This document shows positions 6,640 to 41,784 of a DNA stretch of 41,784 bases, piece after piece. The stretch lies in NCBI GenBank assembly GCA_000388065.2, contig KB932203.1. The stretch is one strand, 5' to 3'. Within the stretch, counting starts at the first letter, position 1; the number at the start of each line of letters is the position of its first letter. The position numbers and the translations under genes were made by a program. The notes under the pieces were generated by a model. The model was not told the DNA's origin. It saw only the letters and a list, made by a program, of their open reading frames with translations, and did no database searches. Origin of the DNA: Fonticula alba ATCC 38817 (Eukaryota > Protista > Nucleariida).

Positions 6640-9600
6640 TCAGAAGTAACCCTCGGTCCGGAAGACCCGGTTGTAGTCCAGATCGCCGCCCGACTCGTCG
6701 GTCGACTCGGCAAACTGGAAGCGGTTGAGCACCGCATGATCCGGGCTCTCGACCATCGGCACATGCGAGCTGTCCATGGCATTGAAGGGCAGCGGGTTGA
6801 TGTCGACCTCGCCGGTGACCGCCTCGCGGATGTAATCCACGGTGTTGCTGGACTCCAGGAGGTCCATGAGCTCCGGCACCTGCTGCTGGAGGATGTGCTC
6901 GTGCTCGGCCGACAGGGTGGAGAAGCTGCTCCGGCGCAGGTAGTCCGCCGACACGGAGGCCGTCTCCTGGTTGCTCACAGACCAGGCATGGGCCGACCCG
7001 AGGCTGGCCAAAGCACGCAGGATGTTCTGGTCCCGGGGGTTCAGCATGCGAGCCTCCGGCGACAGGGCGCTGACCGCCGGCGCAGAGTAGAAGGCCTCCG
7101 CCTCCGGGGAGAAGAGAGCCTGATCGCTGGCATGGGGGAGCGACGTGTCCGAGGAGCTGGGACGACGGCTCACCTCCTCGATGAAGCGCCGGCGCACGGC
7201 CAGCTGGGTCTGGGCACAGGCGTAACCCTGGCGCTCGCGCTCCATGCGGAAGAACAGCGTCGACTCGGCCTCATCAAACTCACTGCGCTGCAGCATCTTG
7301 GTCGAGGCGAAGGGAGCCATGATCAGATCCACCGAGGTGGTCGGGCGCAAGCCAAGCTCAAGGATGCGGTCCTCCTGCGCGGCGGTCTCGTTGGTGGGGA
7401 AGTGCGACCGGAAGAGATCCGCCGCGGCGGTCAGGTTGTTCAGGGACGAGGCCTCATGCGCGGCCTTGGCGAAGCGCGACGTCCGAGAGTAGGTGCTCAG
7501 CGAGGCGCGCAGATTGGCGAAGTTGTGCGGCGAGGTCTTCAGGGCCAGGTTGAAGTCCTGCAGGAAGGGCGACGCCTCGAGGGCCGGGCTGCCGGTGGCC
7601 GGCCACTCCGGCATCGGGATCTCCTTGGTGACCGGGGCATTGACAATGCCATCGGCCGAGGCGCCCGAGCCAGCCAGCCCGCCATCGGGGCTGGTGACCC
7701 CATTCGCCGTGTTCAGGGCCACGGTCAGCTGCTCCGGATCCAGCAGCCCACCAGGGAAGGCCGCGGCATCCAGCCCAGTCGCATGGGTGGCATACTGCAT
7801 CAGGTGCAGCACACTCGGGGCCGCGGCGCCGGCCGAGGCAGCCTCAACACCGGCATCGGTCGAGAAGAGGGACATCTGCTCGTCGGTCGGGCAGCCAAGG
7901 GACCGGTGCAGCTGGAACATCTCGGCCGTGGAGTAGGCCAGACGCCGGTCGGTGGCCGAGGCAAAGCCCGGGAACCGGTGGTCCTCCTCGCGCAGGAACG
8001 GACGATGCTGCACCAGCACATCGAGGATGTCCTCCGCCAGGAACCCATACAAAGCATCAACCAGGCTGACCGGCAGGGCCGCCATGGAGGGAGCCTCATT
8101 CACCCGGGCCGACAGGGCCTCCAGCTGCTCGACGCTGGTCAGCGGCATGCCATCCAGCGACAGGACATTGCCGGCGCCGACACGCTGCAGGACCATCTTC
8201 AGCACCTGCTGCGGGGTCACCAGCGAGGAGATCTGCCGAGACACCCGCGGGTCCGACAGGAGACCGGAGTGGGCCACAAAGTGCAGAGCACTGTACCGGA
8301 GCCCGGCATCGATGGCCACGGCCGAGGCCATGGCCGGATGCTCGGTCATGACCATGAGCGCGGCGCGAAGCTGCTCCGGCAGCGAGCCGGTGGCCAGGAG
8401 CGGCCCATCGGGACCCAGGGCCACCGGGCCCAGCCCCGGCAGGGTAGCCTGCGAGTCGCCGATCGAGTCGCGGAAGCGCTTGACAAAGTCGAAGTGCTGC
8501 GGGAAGAGCCCCAGCAGGGCCGACATGGCGTACGCCCCGCCGGCCGGCAGGGAGCTCGGCATGGCCAGGTGGTGGAAGGGCACCACCTGGGAAATGACGC
8601 TGCTGTTGATGAGCCCCGGGTGCAGGTCGGCCGAAGTGGCCTCCACACCATCCTCGGCCGCGGTCTGCAGGAACTTGTTGCGCACGAAGTCCGGGAACTC
8701 CTGGATCGAGCAGGAGGCCGTGTCCTGGGCAAAGGCCAGGGCGAAGTCGTGCACAAAGTTCACCGCACTCGGGCGATAGGACCCGGCCATCAGGACCGCC
8801 GTGCTCGGGGCCTGGCCCAGCAGCGGCGAACGCAGGGAGGTCCCCTGCAGGCTGGCCAGACCGGACAGCGGGCCGAAGGAGGCATACCGAGCAGCCGGAT
8901 CGGCTGCAACGCCGGCCGGCATCTGCCGGATCAGATCCTGCACCAGGCCCGAAAGCGAAGCCTTGGTATTGAGCTGGCGCATGCGGGTCTCCACGTCATC
9001 GAGCTTGCACCCGGCCAGCAGGGCCAGCATGGCGCCCGAAGCCTTGGGAGCCGGCCGGCCGATCAGCGACTCGAAGGCCGTCGGCGTGTTGATGCCGGAG
9101 GAACCGTGGACACTGTCCCAAGTGCTGTCGGCCTCGGACTCGCTGGAGTCGAAGAGCGCCAGCCCGGTGTAGCGACTGCCCGAGGCACCGGCGGGCGCAT
9201 CGCCCGGCGTGGAGAACGACTTGAGGGCACGCCCGCTCGGGACACCCCACGAGCCATGCGAGGCGCCATCCGACGCGAAGGAATCCTCGCCGGACGACGA
9301 GGAGGACAGGAAGAAGGCGGAAGTGGCCTCGTGATCGAAGTCAAGCTCCCCGGCCGGGTTGGCCGAGAGGGAGGCCGTGGCGCGCTTGAGCTCCTCCTCC
9401 TCCTTCGAAGGGAACTTCCGATCGACGAAGTTCCGGGGGTTGACATCCGGCGGGGGGATGACCGGCAGGGACTCCGAATCCGGGGTCAGGACATCCAGCG
9501 CGTAGCCGGTGCTGGTGAGCAGCCGGCGCGCCGTGCCAGCCGGCGCCGAGAACATCGGCTCGCCATTCGGCATCTTCGGAATGATCGGGCCAAACACATC

Positions 9601-12600
9601 GGAGTCCATGTCATCATCGATATCCCGCTGGATGGGGGGCGGCAGCGGGTCCGTATCGTTGAAGGTCGGATCGGCATAGTCATCGGCCGTCGAGTAGTCC
9701 AGACGGTCCAGCAGCGAGAAGAACTGCTGCATCAGGCGGGCATTGCTCAGCTGGTTGGCCGGGACATGGGGATCCGCCTCGTACTCCTTGAGCGAAGCCG
9801 ACACCGACCCCGGCAGCCGGGGGAAGTCCAGCACCGAGTGCAGGCCGGCCGTGTCGCGGAAGGGGCTGATGGTGGCCGCATCGGTCGGGGCATTGGCCTG
9901 AGACAGGCGCCGGGCCACCTCCATCGGGTGCATGCTGCTCTCCTCCAGCAGGGCACGGAACTCCTCGGTCGGGGCGAGCCCCTGGGCGAAGATGTCCGCC
10001 ACCAGCTGGTTGAAGTTGACGGCAAAGAGGTCGGCCACGGAGTGGCGGTCCGAGGAGCTCAGCTCCCCGCCCAGGGGGTAGTTCTCCGGCAGGCCGGGCA
10101 GCAGCTCCGCCAGGCTGAAGGTGTCCGTGGGCTTGGCATGCGCGGCCAGGTGCGCCAGCACCCGGAGCCAGTGCGTGAAGAGGGCCGTGTTCTCCAGGTA
10201 CAGAGGAGCGGTGAAGTTCAGCTCCGCACCGGGGAAGGGGCACCCCTCGCCCAGGGCCAGGCTCGATGGCAGACCGGAGGCCGGGGTGCCGGCCGCGGCG
10301 CCAGGCGCCACATCGGTCACCGGGTTGAAGCGAGTCATCTCCAGCGGGGAGGCATTGTCAAAGGCCAGGAACGGAGCGAAGGGGGTTCCCAGGCGCGGCT
10401 GCGCCGTGAAGAGGGTCCGGTTGACCGGGCCGGCGGCACCGGCCCAGCCATTCTGCTGGATGTCCACCAGGTGGCCAAGTCCGGCCACATAGGCAATCAT
10501 GTCGCTGACCGACTGGCGGAATTCCTCGGCCAGCAGCAGGGCCGCCCGGCTGTTGGAGAAATCGCCGAAGGAAGCCAACAGAGCCTCATACGTGTGCAGG
10601 AAGGTCAGGTCCGGATCGAAGGCCGGGCGCCGGCTGGGCTCCGGCAGGACCAGCTCCCCGGCCTGGCGCAGGGACTCCATCTCCAGGTACAGGGCACCGG
10701 TCAGGGGGAAGGCCTCCACCAGCTTGGCCAGGGAGGCGGGCATGGCCGGCGAGGGCCGGCCACCGGTCGGCGTGACGGCCGTCGGGTCCAGCACCTGCCC
10801 CTGGGGGGTCTCGGTGGCCGAGGTGGGGCTGATGATCAGCTGCAGAGCCTGGCGCTGGGTGGCGGTCAGCTCCAGGGCATCACGCGCATCGTGGTCCCGG
10901 AAGAGGGGGCTATAATGCCCGGGGTCCGTGAGCCCGGCCAGCCAGGTGAAGGAGGACTGCTCGGAGGCCGACTGAGGGCCATCCTCGTCAGACTCGCCGG
11001 CCGTGACCAGGGGCGAGGTGGCGGCGAAGCGCGCATCGAAGGCAGCCAACGAGCCGGGAACCGTGCGGAAACCGCGAGGGGCCAGCCCGGCCCCGGTCTC
11101 GGCCGCCGCCGCGCCGGTCAGCATGCCACAATGCTCGGGCAGGGACTCGGCGGCGGTGGTCAGCTCGGCGGCGGCTCCGGTCAGCGGGGAGCTGGCGGTC
11201 GGACGCTTGGCGGTGATGACGGTGGTCAGGGCACGGACGCGCTCGGCCACAATGGCATCAGCCGGGCCACTGGGCAGCTGGACCAGGAAGGAAGCCGGGC
11301 CATCCTGGCGGAAGACCTCCGGGAACCGAGGGTAGAAGGCAGCAGCCCCATTGGCGGACACCAGCGAGGCGGCCGGCTGGCCCGAGTGCACGGCCAGGGC
11401 CGGGCCAACGAGCGACTGGTCCAGGCGCTGGATCAGCGACCGGGCAAGATGCCCGGAAATGGCCGCCGGGGCCCGGTGCAGGAAGGGATGCCCCTCCACC
11501 GAGTGAACCACATGCGCGAAGAGCAAGTCCCGGAGGAGCTCGGCGCTGGTGGCCTGGCCGCTGGAAGCCACCGGCTGGTTGAGGACCTTGGCGTACTTGG
11601 AGTTGAACAGGAACTCCAGAGGGCGGTAGGACAGGGGGTCGGTCGGCAGGACCACCGGACGCTTGAACAGGTCAAAGAGCACGCTGTCGGCCACCGGGGC
11701 CAGGGACTGCTCGGTGGCAGACGCACCGGCCTCCGAGGCCGGGGCCTTGCCGGCAGCCAGCTGCTTGAACTCCGGCCGGGCCAGCAGCCCGGTCAAGGGC
11801 TCCAGCATGGCCGCCGATGAGAGGGCCGGCGACTTGGCCAGCATCATGTTGGTCAGGATGTCAGACACCACGGCCGCCTGGGCGCCAGCCGGCAGGGCAG
11901 CCACCCGATTCAGGGTCGGCAGCATGACACCATCGAACACCTGGGCAACACGCTCCAGGCCGGTGGCGCTGTGGGCCAGGTGCCGGGCATGGGGCTTCAT
12001 CGGGCTGTAGCCGTACTCCAGCAGATCAGGCCGAATGGTGCCGGGGTTGCGCAGCGAATAGCCGAGGGCCGTAGAGGCGAAGGTGTCCAGACCGCTGGCC
12101 AGCACGGAATTGACGAAAGCCACCTGGTACTGGAGCGGCGGCAGCGAGGTGTTGTAGGACACCCGGTGGTTGAAGGCCAGCTCCAGGACGTTGTCGATGT
12201 TCTCGCGGGTGATGGGCTTGAAGTCCTCGGCGAACCAGCGCAGGAGCATGGTGCTGGCGGCGGCGCGCGAGCGCTCCACCTCGAGGGCACGCTCAAGGCG
12301 CATGGCCCGGCGAGTGGCCGTGTGCACGCGCCTGGAGGGGAGAGGGGGGAGGGCATCGGGAGGGACAAGGGGAGGGTGAATGACCAGCAGGGGGAGGAGG
12401 GAGGAGGGCATCGGGAGGGCAGACGTACTGCTGGGCAAGCAGGGCCTTGTGCTTGGAGGCCCGGACACTGACCTCGGCCTGGCGGCGGGCCTTGCGCTCC
12501 AGGGCCTCAGGAGAGGTCTTGGCACGCTCCAGCTGCCGGGCCTCGCGGACCAGGCGCTTCTCGTGCATCTCCACGAGGTACTTGCGCCGCATGCGCGAGG

Positions 12601-13104
12601 CCTCCAGCGAGTACGACTGGTCCATGACATTGGGGTTGCCACTGGGCTGCAGGGGGGAAACCTCGTCCTGGTGGTCCGAAGAGGCGGAGGAAAGTGGAGG
12701 CAGGGGGGAGGAGGGGGGAGGGGGGAAAGAGAGGAAGAGACGTGAGCGGGCGGCGGCCTGGGTGCAATCCCGGGGAGGAGGCAGGAAGGAGGGACAGAGG
12801 AATGGGTGGAGACGGCGGCAGCCGCAACAGCAGCAACAGCAAAGACGGAGAGCAGGCCGGGGTGAAAGAGGCGGGACCGGGGCAAGAGGGGGTGGAGGAA
12901 GAAGGCACGCACACGCTTGATGTTCTCGCGAGTGCGCTGGATCAGGGTGTTGCGAGTGGCGAGCTTGCGCTCCTTCTCGGCCAGGCGCTTCTCGGCGAAC
13001 TGGGCGATCGACACCGACAACGGAACACGGGCATACTGGCGGGCGTGCTCCATGGGAGCGGCGGAGGCCAGCTGGCCGGCGCGGAAAATGTTGGAGGAGA
13101 GCAT
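6640..13104 (-). CDS. ~2033-aa protein: mitochondrial presequence, mitoribosomal mS26 (MRPS26)-like region (~aa 1-200), then a ~1830-aa uncharacterised extension
   Basis: Exons 13104-12913, 12646-12429 and 12331-6640 total 6102 nt, in frame, with GTGCGT/GTACGT donors. The N-terminus MLSSNIFRAGQLASAAPMEHARQYA is presequence-like. A charged helical segment is followed by KPITRENIDNVLELAFNHRVSYN, matching the recalled mS26 C-terminal motif [22 protein letters not shown]. Confidence 0.8.
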   Translation of the reverse strand: MLSSNIFRAGQLASAAPMEHARQYARVPLSVSIAQFAEKRLAEKERKLATRNTLIQRTRENIKRVRAFFLHPLLPRSRLFHPGLLSVFAVAAVAAAAVSTHSSVPPSCLLPGIAPRPPPAHVSSSLSPLPPPPPCLHFPPPLRTTRTRFPPCSPVATPMSWTSRTRWRPRACGASTSWRCTRSAWSARPGSWSVPRPLLRPWSARPAARPRSVSGPPSTRPCLPSSTSALPMPSSLLPLLVIHPPLVPPDALPPLPSRRVHTATRRAMRLERALEVERSRAAASTMLLRWFAEDFKPITRENIDNVLELAFNHRVSYNTSLPPLQYQVAFVNSVLASGLDTFASTALGYSLRNPGTIRPDLLEYGYSPMKPHARHLAHSATGLERVAQVFDGVMLPTLNRVAALPAGAQAAVVSDILTNMMLAKSPALSSAAMLEPLTGLLARPEFKQLAAGKAPASEAGASATEQSLAPVADSVLFDLFKRPVVLPTDPLSYRPLEFLFNSKYAKVLNQPVASSGQATSAELLRDLLFAHVVHSVEGHPFLHRAPAAISGHLARSLIQRLDQSLVGPALAVHSGQPAASLVSANGAAAFYPRFPEVFRQDGPASFLVQLPSGPADAIVAERVRALTTVITAKRPTASSPLTGAAAELTTAAESLPEHCGMLTGAAAAETGAGLAPRGFRTVPGSLAAFDARFAATSPLVTAGESDEDGPQSASEQSSFTWLAGLTDPGHYSPLFRDHDARDALELTATQRQALQLIISPTSATETPQGQVLDPTAVTPTGGRPSPAMPASLAKLVEAFPLTGALYLEMESLRQAGELVLPEPSRRPAFDPDLTFLHTYEALLASFGDFSNSRAALLLAEEFRQSVSDMIAYVAGLGHLVDIQQNGWAGAAGPVNRTLFTAQPRLGTPFAPFLAFDNASPLEMTRFNPVTDVAPGAAAGTPASGLPSSLALGEGCPFPGAELNFTAPLYLENTALFTHWLRVLAHLAAHAKPTDTFSLAELLPGLPENYPLGGELSSSDRHSVADLFAVNFNQLVADIFAQGLAPTEEFRALLEESSMHPMEVARRLSQANAPTDAATISPFRDTAGLHSVLDFPRLPGSVSASLKEYEADPHVPANQLSNARLMQQFFSLLDRLDYSTADDYADPTFNDTDPLPPPIQRDIDDDMDSDVFGPIIPKMPNGEPMFSAPAGTARRLLTSTGYALDVLTPDSESLPVIPPPDVNPRNFVDRKFPSKEEEELKRATASLSANPAGELDFDHEATSAFFLSSSSSGEDSFASDGASHGSWGVPSGRALKSFSTPGDAPAGASGSRYTGLALFDSSESEADSTWDSVHGSSGINTPTAFESLIGRPAPKASGAMLALLAGCKLDDVETRMRQLNTKASLSGLVQDLIRQMPAGVAADPAARYASFGPLSGLASLQGTSLRSPLLGQAPSTAVLMAGSYRPSAVNFVHDFALAFAQDTASCSIQEFPDFVRNKFLQTAAEDGVEATSADLHPGLINSSVISQVVPFHHLAMPSSLPAGGAYAMSALLGLFPQHFDFVKRFRDSIGDSQATLPGLGPVALGPDGPLLATGSLPEQLRAALMVMTEHPAMASAVAIDAGLRYSALHFVAHSGLLSDPRVSRQISSLVTPQQVLKMVLQRVGAGNVLSLDGMPLTSVEQLEALSARVNEAPSMAALPVSLVDALYGFLAEDILDVLVQHRPFLREEDHRFPGFASATDRRLAYSTAEMFQLHRSLGCPTDEQMSLFSTDAGVEAASAGAAAPSVLHLMQYATHATGLDAAAFPGGLLDPEQLTVALNTANGVTSPDGGLAGSGASADGIVNAPVTKEIPMPEWPATGSPALEASPFLQDFNLALKTSPHNFANLRASLSTYSRTSRFAKAAHEASSLNNLTAAADLFRSHFPTNETAAQEDRILELGLRPTTSVDLIMAPFASTKMLQRSEFDEAESTLFFRMERERQGYACAQTQLAVRRRFIEEVSRRPSSSDTSLPHASDQALFSPEAEAFYSAPAVSALSPEARMLNPRDQNILRALASLGSAHAWSVSNQETASVSADYLRRSSFSTLSAEHEHILQQQVPELMDLLESSNTVDYIREAVTGEVDINPLPFNAMDSSHVPMVESPDHAVLNRFQFAESTDESGGDLDYNRVFRTEGYF

Positions 13105-36443: not shown

Positions 36444-36476
<33 letters not shown>

Positions 36477-36788: not shown

Positions 36789-37444
36789 GTTGGCAGGGGG
36801 GGGGGGCGGGAGTGGGTGGGGACGAGTAGCACGGAGATGTGCGACTCGACGGAGGGGAGGAAAACACCGGGCGGGGAGGAGAAGGGAGGTAGGGGGTGAG
36901 GGCGGCGGTGTGGTCTGGAGGTGGGGGAAGATCTCTTCCCTGCGCGGCGTCGCGGTTCGCCTTGTTCCCTCGGTCCATGTCCCCTGCATGTGTGGGAGGG
37001 TGGGAGCACCACCGTGGCCGGGGGACCTCACGCAATCCTCGCGAGGCCACACGGGCGGGTGTGCCCGTTCAGCCTGCGAAGAAAGTCGGACGGGCCCAGA
37101 TGCTGGGAGACCGGGATGGCCCGGGTTACGGGGAATTGTGCAGGTGGCTGCGCCGTTTACGATGGCAGTGGCGGCGGCGGTGGCGGCGCAACGGCAGCAG
37201 CGCAGCGGCGTCGGCGCGTCAGCCGCGGCCCGGCCGCGGCCCACCCGTGCTCACACACAAGGGGCATCCAGCTGGCAGATCCCGCGATGGCGGTCCGGCC
37301 TGATGGCAAGCCGTGCGGGCCCGGCCCTGGTGGGCACGCTCGACCCCACCCGCCAGCGCAGGGGACCGCTGGGACACCGAGGTCCGGCCTCCAAAGGCGC
37401 GGGCATGCTTGCACGCTCGGCGGGCGGCCAACGGAGGGGGGGGG

Positions 37445-37914
37445 NNNNNNNNNNNNNNNNNNNNNNNNNNNNNNNNNNNNNNNNNNNNNNNNNNNNNNNN
37501 NNNNNNNNNNNNNNNNNNNNNNNNNNNNNNNNNNNNNNNNNNNNNNNNNNNNNNNNNNNNNNNNNNNNNNNNNNNNNNNNNNNNNNNNNNNNNNNNNNNN
37601 NNNNNNNNNNNNNNNNNNNNNNNNNNNNNNNNNNNNNNNNNNNNNNNNNNNNNNNNNNNNNNNNNNNNNNNNNNNNNNNNNNNNNNNNNNNNNNNNNNNN
37701 NNNNNNNNNNNNNNNNNNNNNNNNNNNNNNNNNNNNNNNNNNNNNNNNNNNNNNNNNNNNNNNNNNNNNNNNNNNNNNNNNNNNNNNNNNNNNNNNNNNN
37801 NNNNNNNNNNNNNNNNNNNNNNNNNNNNNNNNNNNNNNNNNNNNNNNNNNNNNNNNNNNNNNNNNNNNNNNNNNNNNNNNNNNNNNNNNNNNNNNNNNNN
37901 NNNNNNNNNNNNNN
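37445..37914. other. Largest assembly gap (470 N). Other gaps: 6223-6232, 13459-13623, 18152-18297, 19127-19233, 22236-22250, 30138-30185, 36292-36372
   Basis: N runs, mostly bordered by poly-G/C or (CA)n tracts. Confidence 0.99.
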
Positions 37915-39118
37915 ACACACACACACACACACACACACAGACACACACAGACACACACACACACACACACACGTTGCCCGACCCTTGCGGCTGGCTCCCC
38001 CCTTTGGATTCCTCCATTTCTGGCCCTGCCACTCCCCGCGGGGACCGGACGGGCGCCGGCGCATCACCCGCACACGCGGCGCCCAGGTGGCGGAGAATGC
38101 ACGCCATCGCCTGGCGCATGCACCGGGGCCGGTGCGCGTCAGAGCGTTGGGCGCACCCAGGCGATGGCCTGATGCTGGGCCCCCTCGGTGGTACGGTTGG
38201 CGGGGGGGGGGGGGCCAGGCGGTGCCTGCTCTCCGGCCCGCATCCCCGCCAGGACCAATCAGCTGGTTTTCCCGGCTCCGGCGCATGCCCGAACACACGG
38301 GCCCCTTAAAAACGGCCAGGTAAACCACACCCACCCACGCACCCTCACATACCCTGCTGGTGTCCAGGCTCCCGGCCTGGGGGCGGCTAGGGCGCACTGT
38401 TGCTGTGAACGCCCCCGGGGCTCCCTCCCCCCATGCAGGGCCAGCCCCGGCAGCTCCTGGTTGCCCCGCCCTCGCGCAGAGGCATGTTGCTCAAGCCGGG
38501 TGTATGCCGCGCGACCCTGGGGCCGTGGTCCTCCTAGCTCCCCTCCGGAAAGCGTGTGTATGCCGCGCGCATCGCGCCGCGTCTTCCACACGGGCGGCGC
38601 ATGCGAGGTCGGTGCCCGCGCGGCGGCCTCGAGGGGCCCCCCCCCGTCGGCAGGAGTCCCTGGTCGGAGACGGCCCGCGAGGGCGGGGGAGGATGCATCG
38701 ACGCTTTCCCCGCCCGTGTGCCCGGACACGACCGACACGCAGGAACACCCCCACCATGGTAAACCCTGCCACGGCCCTCGGAGCCGGCCGGGGACGCGCC
38801 GACATCGATCGGACGGAGCTGCCTCGGCCGACAGGGGCCGGCACGGGTCCGAGCCCGGTCGACCCCTTCTCTTCGCGCCGACACGCGTGTGGCTGGCCCC
38901 GACGACAGACGGCCTGGCCGGGCCGGGCCGAGCCGCGGCACGGTGCCCCCTTGCTGCCCCTTTTTCAGGGAAGGCCGGAGGGCCGGCTTCTTCGGCATGC
39001 GGTGGGCGGCCGAAAAAAATCGGCCTCCACACATGCGTCCCCCTGCCGGAAATTTTTGGCAGGGTTCCTTCTTCAGCGAGAATATATGGCCTTATGGAAC
39101 CCTGATTTCCATGAATCC

Positions 39119-39191
39119 GGGGGCGTAGCTCAAATGGTAGAGCGGCCGCTTAGCATGCGGCAGGCAGGGGGATCGATACCCTCCGCCTCCA
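39119..39191 (+). tRNA. tRNA-Ala(AGC), intronless
   Basis: 73-nt cloverleaf. The acceptor stem GGGGGCG/CGCCTCC has the G3:U70 alanine identity pair and discriminator A73. The anticodon arm is GCCGC-TT-AGC-AT-GCGGC. The T-loop ATCGATA has A54, as is usual for eukaryotic Ala-AGC. Confidence 0.97.
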
Positions 39192-39201
39192 TTTATTTTT
39201 T
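39192..39201 (+). terminator. RNA polymerase III terminator (T-run)
   Basis: TTTATTTTTT directly follows the tRNA 3' end. Confidence 0.85.
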
Positions 39202-39662
39202 AACTTGGCTCCGATCAGCCTCGGGGAGGGGGCGCGGCAACACTTCCTTCCCATCTCCCAACGTGGCCGATCAAAAATCCGATGATGCGGAGGGGCTGCC
39301 TGCCAAGTGGGCTCCACGCGCAGTGGCACTTTGCTTCCGATGGTTTGAGCATGTCCCCCCCCCCCCAGATAATTTGATATATATGAGAGCCAGAGGCACC
39401 CCCCCTCCTCCCCCCGGAGACCCATTCTGGGCAGAAATCATCCGTCCCCCTCTCACCCCCCCCCCTCCCTTTTTGGCTCTCCCCAACCCATCTACTTTGC
39501 CTCCTCCACATCCGGCTGCTGGTTCGTGCGTCCCGAAAGGAGCCCTGCCTGCCGGAGCCCAGCTTCCTTGCCCGTTCCGTTCCCCTGGCCCATCGTCGAG
39601 TGTGGGCCACACTTTTCCGGGCGTCCCCCCCCCCTCCTCGATAAAGGCTCGCCCTCCAGCTC

Positions 39663-41549
39663 ATGCAATCCATGTTGGCGGCTGGCAGGCTGGCCCTGCG
39701 CCGGATGGCGATGCCGCCGGGCCGGAGCCTCTCACAAGTCGCATCCTCATCTCGTGGGACCCTCTCGGCCGGGGAGCGTCTCTGTCGTGACATCGAGAAC
39801 GGAGTGGTCCCCTTGCCACGGGGCTTCGACACGGTGACGGACTTTCACTTTTTTTTGCGCCTGGCCGGGGCGCGGTCACCTCCGGACACCGACGAAAGCA
39901 TCTTGGCCAGTGAGGTCCGGCGAACTGGCCGACTGATTGGGATGGACGAGGTTTCGACCAGGATGCTGCTGGAGAAGTTTGGCGAGGCGTTTGGAATTCC
40001 CCCCCCCGATCCCTCGTCGGAGGGTGTATTCCATGAGCCCCGGTCAAGGGATTCGGTTTTCAAGGACGTGATGATGCTGTTCGGGCGCGATCCGCCGGTT
40101 CCTGCATCCACCATCTCGCGCTTGACAGGCGTGGCCCTTGCCAGGACGAAATACCTGCTGCATGCTCGCTCACCCTTGAAGCCTTTGACATCCCGAAGCC
40201 AGCCAAGCATCAGTCGGCTGCGGGATTTGTGTTTCATTTGGCCGCCGATCTTGTTGCACCAAGCGGCACGACTGCTATCGTCCTCCGAAGAACAAATCAC
40301 TCAGACCATCGTGCGACACCTGCCCGAGTGCCCTTACCTCTTGTCCCAGCCCCTGTCCCCCCGGGAGGAGGAACACATGCGAGCGAAAATGAGAGCCGCA
40401 CTGGACATCGACCCGCTGCCGGAGCCGAGGAGCCTTTGCGTGCAATTGGGGATGTTCTGGCGGACATTCCACATCCATGGGCCGAACATCTGCCCGGAGT
40501 ATGTCATCCGGTTGCGGGGGGAATTGCCCGCGCAGCAGGTTGCGCGGATGCGCGAACTGCTGGCCATGCAGACATTGACCATCTTTGAAATGGCCTCCGG
40601 TTTGGGGATCCGGCCAAACGACCTCCGGTGGTACATCAAGTACTATGAGCCGATGGTGGAGCTGCCGCCGTCCAACCAGCTGCCGGTCCGGGCCTTGGCC
40701 CCGGTCGGCGGCCGGGGCAAACTCACTCGTCAGCAGTATGCCGAAGCTCGGCTGCCGGTGGGTTCGCCGATTCTCAAGGAATTCGAGCCTGGAGGGATGC
40801 TGGCCGAGCCGGCGGATTGGCAAGCAGCCGCTCCCTTGCCTGCGGCGGCTCATGTGAAGGTGCAGCCTCCTCCGCACGACCTGGTGTGGGTCTCATTCAT
40901 GGGTTTGGCCATGAGACCGCCGCTGATGAAACGCGAAATGTGCACTCAATTGGGGACAACGTGGCGGGTAGTCGACAAGTACACGGAGGCCGCACCGCCG
41001 GACCTTTTCCAACCATATCCCGAGATGTTGAATCTCTCGGTGACGGAAGTTCGCCGCTTGCGGGCGTTCGGCCGCGAGGTGCACCCGGAGGGCGGGCGCA
41101 TGCGCTTTACAGTGCGGGACTTGGCCCGAAAGATGGCCATCCCCGAGGACTTGGTGTATTCGATGCTTCATCGCTATTGTCCGGAGTACTTCTTCTTGGC
41201 TCTTCCGCCCGAGGCACGATCCGGCCTTGGGGGGATGTATGTGCCGGAGGAGAAGTTGGATGCCCTTTTGGCGGCGTACAGCCACAATCCGAAAGAGATC
41301 CCCCAGAAGCTGGCCGCGGATTTGGGCTGTACCCTGCCGCAGGTGGTGAACTCCCTTCGAGCCCATGTCACCGGGCAGGGCAAGCGGTACATGGCGCCCA
41401 TGTTTGCTCGGCACGGGGCCAATCGTGCCTTTGAGATTGAGCAGATGCTGGCAGCACATCCGGACAAAGCCATCAGCACTGTGGGCCTCCGCTGTGGGTT
41501 GAATTTGCGGGTCATGCGGTCTGCCTATCCATATTTGCTCGAGCAATAG
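39663..41549 (+). CDS. Intronless 628-aa hypothetical protein with a predicted mitochondrial presequence and ~9 tandem helix-turn-helix-like repeats
   Basis: Long ORF with no microsatellites or C-runs. The N-terminus MQSMLAAGRLALRRMAMPPGRSLSQVASSSR is Arg/Ser-rich and lacks acidic residues. A recurring hxxhAxxhGh motif appears every 50-63 aa. Confidence 0.75.
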   Translation: MQSMLAAGRLALRRMAMPPGRSLSQVASSSRGTLSAGERLCRDIENGVVPLPRGFDTVTDFHFFLRLAGARSPPDTDESILASEVRRTGRLIGMDEVSTRMLLEKFGEAFGIPPPDPSSEGVFHEPRSRDSVFKDVMMLFGRDPPVPASTISRLTGVALARTKYLLHARSPLKPLTSRSQPSISRLRDLCFIWPPILLHQAARLLSSSEEQITQTIVRHLPECPYLLSQPLSPREEEHMRAKMRAALDIDPLPEPRSLCVQLGMFWRTFHIHGPNICPEYVIRLRGELPAQQVARMRELLAMQTLTIFEMASGLGIRPNDLRWYIKYYEPMVELPPSNQLPVRALAPVGGRGKLTRQQYAEARLPVGSPILKEFEPGGMLAEPADWQAAAPLPAAAHVKVQPPPHDLVWVSFMGLAMRPPLMKREMCTQLGTTWRVVDKYTEAAPPDLFQPYPEMLNLSVTEVRRLRAFGREVHPEGGRMRFTVRDLARKMAIPEDLVYSMLHRYCPEYFFLALPPEARSGLGGMYVPEEKLDALLAAYSHNPKEIPQKLAADLGCTLPQVVNSLRAHVTGQGKRYMAPMFARHGANRAFEIEQMLAAHPDKAISTVGLRCGLNLRVMRSAYPYLLEQ

Positions 41550-41784
41550 ACGGCCCTGATGGGCAAAGATATTTATGTGGAATTTCGGCATCAACCCAAG
41601 CGGCTGTGATTTCCGCCGTGGAGGTCTTCCAAAAGCAAAGCCAATTTGGGATCGTCCTGATCGCCCTCCGGTGTAATGTGGTATCACGTGCCATCTAGGA
41701 ACTTGTGGCAGGGTTCACACGGGTTAAGCCTGAGTCAAGTGAGTGAGGCTTGACGAAGGGTACCAGTGTGATCTGCCACCTGGT

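Follow-up and report, generated by a model that had tools for sequence, protein, structure and literature searches.

In eukaryotes, gene expression in organelles depends on a small number of types of modular helical-repeat protein (PPR, OPR, HPR and mTERF), all of them solenoids of helical hairpins. PPR, OPR and HPR proteins form expanded, clustered, fast-evolving and organelle-targeted families whose modules vary in specificity, while mTERF proteins, nuclear-encoded and organelle-targeted, are all-helical modular binders that have multiplied by paralogy in some lineages. A second design, in which helix-turn-helix (HTH) modules stand in tandem on one chain, is seen in TnsD/TniQ, the bacterial Tn7-like target selectors, where several such modules jointly read a long DNA site; in Tc1/mariner and IS630 transposases, the Pax paired domain, DUX4 and Myb, which combine two or three homeodomain-like modules; and in the C-terminal array of four winged-helix domains of SelB, which shows that tandem HTH-type modules can bind structured RNA. 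Here we describe a gene of Fonticula alba whose product is built on this second design and begins with a leader of the kind expected of the first. It lies at positions 39663-41549 of a 41,784-nucleotide stretch (hereafter the window; contig KB932203.1 of assembly GCA_000388065.2), which corresponds to bases 3,440,179-3,481,962 of contig C3 in the 31.3-Mb assembly.

The Fonticula protein differs from each of these systems. Its units recur with a period of 50-63 amino acids (aa) and each is a globular HTH, whereas the mTERF motif is about 30 aa long and builds a superhelix, so that the mTERF proteins would be functional analogues only; likewise PPR, OPR and HPR units are helical hairpins of 35-38 aa on single-stranded RNA, while those of Fonticula are three-helix HTHs of a DNA-binding clan, although the Fonticula family is expanded, clustered and fast-evolving like the former, and organelle targeting and specificity set by variable modules are what we propose for it. 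The Fonticula protein is composed of eight or nine modules without a further domain, against two or three in Tc1/mariner, IS630, Pax, DUX4 and Myb, to which the transposases add a catalytic domain. In SelB the domains are winged and joined to a GTPase, but most Fonticula units have no modelled wing. Proteins combining TniQ with an HTH array are the best matches of the family profile outside Fonticula (E 5e-14 to 3e-7), yet the Fonticula protein has neither the TniQ zinc-ribbon domain nor a transposon context, and is eukaryotic, spliced and equipped with a presequence-like leader; the likeness to TnsD is generic to HTH arrays, with a Foldseek E-value of 1.6 for the TnsD structure 8v32.

The window gene is a divergent member of a multi-copy Fonticula family and not a lone novelty. 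Our preferred reading, to which we give a probability of about 0.45, is that it encodes a nuclear-encoded, mitochondrially imported array of eight or nine HTH modules that reads a long site on mitochondrial DNA (mtDNA) or structured mitochondrial RNA (mtRNA).

Tandem HTH units

The open reading frame (ORF) encodes a basic protein of roughly 70 kDa, with 77 lysines and arginines against 64 acidic residues. An earlier note, made from the letters of the window alone, had read this protein as some nine tandem tri-helical HTH-like repeats. The nine unit strings it listed are each found at their place, and all nine turn residues are present (G93, G156, S206, G263, G315, G431, A492, G555 and G612). 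The window protein and nine full-length paralogs from the same genome were aligned (alignment A1), the alignment was cut into nine unit profiles, and these were compared pairwise by hhalign with 108 column-shuffled controls. The units are placed in register, with 25 of the 36 pairs above the 95th percentile of the controls and 12 of the 36 above the control maximum. A stricter test demanded that a hidden Markov model (HMM) made from eight units find the one left out; units 1-8 are then recognised in 6-10 of the ten paralogs and unit 9 in three of ten, while in the window protein itself recognition extends to units 2-8 but not to units 1 and 9. Domains are assigned there by the eight-unit HMM at residues 61-107, 126-171, 178-222, 231-279, 285-330, 402-445, 461-508 and 523-568. 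The statistical significance of the repeats is borne out by these two comparisons, and the tandem array is real: units 1-8 are supported by sequence, and a ninth, included in the earlier count, appears in the AlphaFold2 model only. No domain was assigned by the eight-unit HMM in the 330-402 gap, and a hidden tenth unit in aa 329-404, where the earlier note had seen a double spacing, was rejected, none being detected. The coding sequence and the parts of the array are as follows.

39663..41549, + strand: coding sequence, an open ORF of 628 aa with the stop codon included in the coordinates; isoelectric point (pI) 9.3
39834..39992, + strand: HTH unit 1, aa 58-110, with long helices (leave-one-out HMM in 8/10 paralogs, not in the window copy; AlphaFold2)
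40053..40169, + strand: HTH unit 2, aa 131-169 (hhalign, HMM, AlphaFold2)
40209..40319, + strand: HTH unit 3, aa 183-219 (hhalign, HMM, AlphaFold2)
40359..40490, + strand: HTH unit 4, aa 233-276 (hhalign, HMM, AlphaFold2)
40530..40646, + strand: HTH unit 5, aa 290-328, holding the invariant W323-Y-I (paralog alignment, hhalign, HMM, AlphaFold2)
40647..40874, + strand: spacer, aa 329-404, partly conserved (Y359, L364-P365, S368) and mostly poorly modelled
40875..40991, + strand: HTH unit 6, aa 405-443 (hhalign, HMM, AlphaFold2)
41040..41177, + strand: HTH unit 7, aa 460-505 (AlphaFold2, HMM; Pfam HTH_23 passed here in several paralogs, the window copy reaching only HTH_17 at 17.3 bits)
41181..41255, + strand: near-invariant linker, aa 507-531, P-E-Y-F-F-L-A ... 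S-G-x-G-G-x-x-V-P-x-x-K
41247..41375, + strand: HTH unit 8, aa 529-571, the best-conserved unit (alignment, AlphaFold2, superpositions)
41415..41534, + strand: unit 9, aa 585-624, tri-helical in the model and not recognised by sequence

Variation across the family is greatest in units 3, 4, 6 and 9. The linker of aa 507-531, which carries a Gly-rich loop between units 7 and 8, is the family's most conserved block and shows no known motif that we could recognise.

When run on alignment A1, AlphaFold2 models nine helix or helix-turn-helix units along the whole chain, with a predicted local distance difference test score (pLDDT) of 72 and a predicted template modelling score (pTM) of 0.49; confidence is poor at residues 1-32 and 375-407, and most units lack modelled wings (beta-hairpins). 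All nine are three-helix units with a tight turn, as in the HTH clan of Pfam (CL0123), and the earlier expectation that a structural model would show HTH units is upheld. The C-terminal 184 residues modelled alone (aa 445-628) reach a pLDDT of 87.9 and a pTM of 0.83, from which we conclude that units 7-9 form one compact module. Foldseek against the PDB returned nothing at E<=1e-3 for either the whole chain or this module, the ESM Atlas gave template modelling scores <=0.2 by structure and no usable match by features, and neither the protein nor the family profile drew a meaningful match from the PDB by sequence. The weak top rows of Foldseek and the Atlas are tandem DNA- or RNA-binding arrays, namely SelB winged helices (the top whole-chain Foldseek match, non-significant at E 0.098), topoisomerase V, TAL effectors, Reb1, DUX4 and TnsD. 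At the level of the single unit, an exhaustive aligner superposes unit 8 on the HTHs of Lrp/AsnC, Tn3 resolvase, homeodomains, Myb, SETMAR and Mos1 with Z-scores of 5.2-6.2, middling by the aligner's own note, and root-mean-square deviations of 2.1-2.6 A over 47-49 residues; two adjacent units superpose on the Myb pair of Cdc5, on tandem engrailed and on DUX4.

Pfam scans of the family proteins (10 + 10) agree in part: the window protein stays below threshold, and matches in the paralogs are confined to HTH-clan families, some above the gathering score. The best families are HTH_23, HTH_28, HTH_29 and HTH_32; at unit 7, HTH_23 reaches 35.3, 28.4 and 25.5 bits in paralogs against a gathering score of 24.6. 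A 49-aa unit consensus emitted by hmmemit passes HTH_IclR (24.4 against 22 bits), with 13 more HTH-type families below threshold. The unit is a generic HTH-clan module. Domains of the mTERF, PPR, TniQ and transposase catalytic kinds are absent from the same scans, and the earlier view that the array follows the HTH pattern and not that of mTERF, PPR or a transposase agrees with this and with the modelled units.

Four known classes were considered as homes for the protein and each was rejected. Against mTERF membership stand the absence of PF02536 from the window protein at E<=10, the period of 50-63 aa and the globular three-helix units; PPR, OPR and HPR membership is contradicted by the lack of a Pfam match, by three helices per unit and by a period longer than 35-38 aa. 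PF06527 is absent from the window protein and its paralogs and present in the bacterial matches P0021, P0023 and P0024, which disposes of TnsD/TniQ membership. A remnant of an IS630 or Tc1/mariner transposase is not indicated either, there being HTH families only and no inverted repeats flanking the ORF, although the HTH unit itself could still have been derived from a transposase domain of that type.

A multi-copy Fonticula family

A six-frame search of the genome gave 36 matches, 13 of which span the greater part of the protein, with a stop in just one of them. HMMER profile searches of 1.84 billion representative proteins produced 19 matches below 1e-10; all 16 of these that were looked up are from F. 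alba, the window's own product included, and by this sequence criterion the family appears only in Fonticula alba (every match below 1e-10 looked up, 16 of 19). The literature holds no description of it that we could find, and the earlier suggestion of an undescribed family gains from both results. The next profile matches are a 900-aa HTH-array protein of F. alba encoded on another contig, H696_00212 (P0020), and bacterial HTH arrays, with E-values of 1e-13 to 1e-4; the bacterial ones include TniQ/TnsD-like proteins, a protein in which an IS630-type HTH is repeated ten-fold, and one of HNH-HTH type.

The window copy and L009 are the most divergent of all: identity between the window copy and any other member is 35-40%, while the others average 44% and reach 63%. 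The window copy is also solitary, 139 kb from the end of its own contig. Of the 36 genomic matches, 27 are no more than 50 kb away from the end of a contig. A young subfamily, with nucleotide identities of 85-92%, occupies contig starts, and in several cases a contig breaks off within a copy. The start of contig C4 (L013:46-520) and the end of C15 (L024:2598-3064) are 94.5% identical in opposite orientation, in the manner of homology blocks at chromosome ends. TTAGGG-type telomere repeats were found in none of the 30 loci fetched, which include the examined contig ends, and a subtelomeric label for the family is therefore unproven. Tandem clusters of three copies or fragments each occur on C17 (L004, L015 and L017, at 240712-245287) and on C14 (L009, L019 and L025, at 529076-533970), and some copies in these clusters are truncated or carry a stop, a pattern of birth and death.

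Multiplicity, the bacterial TniQ/TnsD-like and IS630-type arrays as nearest matches outside Fonticula, and a tRNA-Ala gene 470 bp upstream of the window ORF might suggest the protein of a mobile element, acting in DNA binding or target selection, or else a recent lateral or retro acquisition. We consider this very improbable and the least likely of the rival explanations. Old copies resemble one another in DNA sequence only as far as the ORF extends, no inverted repeats flank it and no transposase was seen within 1.5 kb; no tRNA gene stands by the 12 other family loci scanned. On these grounds a transposon or a tRNA-targeted element was rejected. The copies, moreover, differ at about 60% of protein positions, the bacterial matches are weak and generic, G+C content at third codon positions (GC3) is 74-92% over the family, and a spliceosomal intron is present. 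The retro- or lateral origin that the earlier note had entertained for the window gene is unsupported, there being no close bacterial homologue, a GC3 of 74% and at least 13 diverged paralogs of which this is one.

Leader sequence and predicted location

The earlier note had called the N-terminus presequence-like, and this description holds.

39663..39773, + strand: presequence-like leader, aa 1-37, with five arginines and lysines and no acidic residue in the first 35 aa, and R21-S-L-S

The first acidic residue of the window protein is at aa 38. Seven of the 10 members have leaders with no acidic and at least five basic residues in the first 35 aa, a composition shown by 11% of 62 background ORFs drawn from the GC-rich window itself. 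The acidic share is 3.3% over the ten leaders, as compared with 10.1% for the protein bodies (P = 5e-13) and 6.4% for open frames read in all six frames of the window (P = 9e-5). The leaders are otherwise unalignable, and at one column 6 of the 10 members share R-x-[F/L]-S, read as R21-S-L-S in the window protein and as R-A-F-S-S, R-G-F-S-S or R-G-L-S-S in five paralogs. The textbook MPP/Icp55 processing motif, to which this column corresponds, is R-x-[F/Y/L]-[S/A] with arginine at -2/-3. As controls from the same organism, the N-termini of Hsp60 and F1-ATPase beta were read from the Fonticula genome, for the latter the junction only, its leader being split by an intron; at the citrate synthase loci no N-terminal exon was seen. 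The Hsp60 leader has its first acidic residue about 44 residues in and ends in ...A-S-R-T-Y-S-T-G, and in F1-beta R-Y-N-S-S-A-A-A directly precedes the conserved mature start. Judged by sequence, then, the family leaders look like Fonticula matrix presequences, the motif match being to a predicted cleavage site. All ten members are basic (pI 9.2-10.0). We put the mitochondrial location of the window protein and its family at roughly two in three from these sequence features, and the combination of an HTH array with such a leader suggests that the family consists of factors acting on DNA or RNA in mitochondria.

A nuclear or dual-located family of DNA-binding proteins is the strongest competitor, although we think it rather unlikely. 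It would have been amplified from a transposase-type or homeodomain-like HTH, would act on nuclear DNA, perhaps in the repeat-rich regions at chromosome ends or in transcriptional regulation particular to the lineage, and its basic N-terminus would be no import signal. The four Pfam families best matched by the paralogs are common in IS630/Tc1-like transposases, the 27 of 36 matches near contig ends and the end sequence common to C4 and C15 fit a chromosome-end role, and H696_00212 has at its N-terminus a K-R-P-R resembling a nuclear localisation signal. Acid-depleted leaders with a conserved R-x-F/L-S-S junction like those of Hsp60 and F1-beta argue the other way, as do the lack of a DDE domain, inverted repeats or tRNA association in the paralogs and of telomere repeats at the contig ends examined.

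The mtDNA is contig C211, where cob (7797-8357) and cox1 (11396-12739) both lie on the minus strand and the G+C content is 25-34% against about 65% in nuclear DNA; one 3.6-kb piece of its sequence was read directly (L031 = C211:6297-9857). The genome search gave no HTH-family match on this contig. Six-frame scans of the genome found no mTERF (PF02536, E<=0.001) and no PPR (PF01535) above the cut-off, though without a positive control and with little power for short motifs; one sub-threshold PPR_2 match lies at C9:947354-947458. At most the scans hint that mTERF and PPR, the customary organellar repeat families, are not expanded in Fonticula.

Rates of evolution and transcription

The HTH-array family evolves fast. 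Ratios of non-synonymous to synonymous substitution (dN/dS), calculated by NG86, are 0.55-1.06 among the ten members and 0.86-1.2 among the young copies (dS about 0.09, with no stop in 440-610 codons), and are to be read as upper estimates since the high GC3 probably lowers dS. Helices 2 and 3 have values of 0.83-0.87 against 0.68-0.70 for helix 1 and the linkers, and the lowest, 0.57-0.58, are those of units 7-8. The Rf-like PPR clusters are likewise expanded and fast-evolving, and in its high dN/dS and genomic clustering the Fonticula family resembles them. About 66 columns are invariant across the ten members, which are 35-63% identical, a near-invariant C-terminal block among them.

Four public sequencing runs, all from one study, contain the locus. 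Assembled contigs were used, from which splicing ratios cannot be derived. They cover 39443-41571 only, with starts at 39443-39467 and zero coverage over 38400-39442 (the 1 kb upstream, tRNA gene included) and over 41572-41703. The run record is silent on RNA; we take the contigs as RNA because their coverage is confined in this way and a GT..AG junction is present. The window gene is transcribed, and its transcript has the following features.

39443..39662, + strand: 5' untranslated region, defined by the contig starts, with no upstream ATG
40499..40640, + strand: facultative 142-nt intron, GTATGT...AG, defined by the spliced joint 40498->40641 in the contigs
41550..41571, + strand: short 3' end of the transcript contigs, defined by contig coverage

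No ATG occurs in 39443-39662, so the ATG of the ORF is the first AUG of the transcript. The spliced joint is present in all four runs, in each of which another contig reads unspliced across 40469-40670. The earlier note had called the gene intronless, and this is right in so far as the unspliced form exists and, in the ten-paralog alignment, is the one conserved in the family, with the invariant W323-Y-I; part of the transcripts nevertheless lose the intron. Its removal takes away most of unit 5 and shifts the frame, yielding exactly the annotated 350-aa 'variant 2' protein (P0001), as was checked by translating the spliced form. Frameshifting splicing could be regulatory and unproductive, or else noise. 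In several paralogs (L002, L004, L005 and L011) the corresponding codons carry the letters of the GTATG donor and the CAAG acceptor, an observation that proves nothing about how those paralogs are spliced. Selection for the splice donor through a rare-looking TAT codon was considered and rejected: TAT makes up 47% of the family's Tyr codons, and its conservation in 9 of 10 members is therefore uninformative.

The fast rates and the frameshifting splice both bear on whether the family has a sequence-specific function at all. On one view it is a lineage-specific family in rapid drift with little or no such nucleic-acid function, its HTH modules being scaffold or in decay and the splice reflecting weak selection on the window copy. 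A dN/dS near 1 between young copies, the many fragments and decayed copies, the splicing of part of the window gene's transcripts into a frameshifted form and recognition helices no more conserved than the rest all accord with drift. We nonetheless find it unlikely, given that most of the at least 13 long copies are free of stops and frameshifts despite a dS of up to about 1, and the young ones have none over 440-610 codons; that about 66 columns, C-terminal block included, are invariant; that the window gene is transcribed; and that a basic pI is kept in all members.

Proposed function

Under the mitochondrial reading that we prefer, the cleavable-looking presequence would direct import into mitochondria, where a monomer may bind a long asymmetric site on mtDNA or on a structured mtRNA. 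Successive HTH modules would read successive stretches of that site, by analogy with the bacterial TnsD array on DNA. The variable units 3, 4, 6 and 9 could set targets specific to each paralog, while the near-invariant units 7-8 and their Gly-rich linker would carry a common function, for instance contact with a shared partner.

Several observations weigh against this proposal. The likeness of the leaders to presequences is partly an effect of composition in a genome of 65-70% GC, several paralog start codons were picked by us and some annotated models start later. The distant relative H696_00212, in which six stretches are matched and the HTH modules are significant in Pfam, starts with acidic residues followed by K-R-P-R and looks more nuclear than mitochondrial, and clustering near the ends of contigs is a common trait among nuclear families that evolve fast. 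The dN/dS values of 0.55-1.06 and 0.86-1.2 could reflect weak constraint and not diversification. As to the fold, the model of the whole chain is of moderate quality only (pTM 0.49), no significant whole-chain match was obtained by Foldseek against the PDB or in the ESM Atlas, and the window protein itself stays below the Pfam threshold, its best score being 17.3 bits for HTH_17 against a cut-off of 27.

A broader proposal, which we hold to be doubtful though worth stating, is that the family forms a class of organellar gene-expression factors of its own, comprising some 15-30 imported and rapidly diversifying HTH-array proteins, each with a different long target on the AT-rich mtDNA or its transcripts, recognised through its variable modules, and all with one invariant C-terminal module for docking to a common machine. 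In a genome where the scans show no expansion of mTERF or PPR, such a class might fill the role of PPR, OPR, HPR or mTERF proteins or of the mRNA-specific activators of yeast, and conflict with the mitochondrial genome might be what drives it.

If the family is mitochondrial, a globular HTH domain would have been amplified head to tail and recruited for organelle expression in a lineage next to fungi, giving a new and possibly programmable modular reader of nucleic acid and a further case, outside plants, of fast, clustered birth-and-death evolution of organelle-targeted factors. If it is nuclear, a species-restricted expansion of arrays of 8-9 HTH modules would still be unusual in a eukaryote.

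Other features of the window

A tRNA-Ala(AGC) gene at 39119-39191 (+ strand) lies about 250 bp upstream of the transcript start, and its adjacency to the HTH-array gene looks incidental. On the other side, beyond the coverage gap, contigs of much higher word depth (about 360-550) begin in 41704-41784 and probably mark the start of a strongly expressed neighbour gene. Further upstream an AT-rich island at 37001-38000, with a GC fraction of 0.38 against ~0.65 in its surroundings, closes with an (AC)29 microsatellite (37915-37972), and a G32 run occupies 36445-36476.

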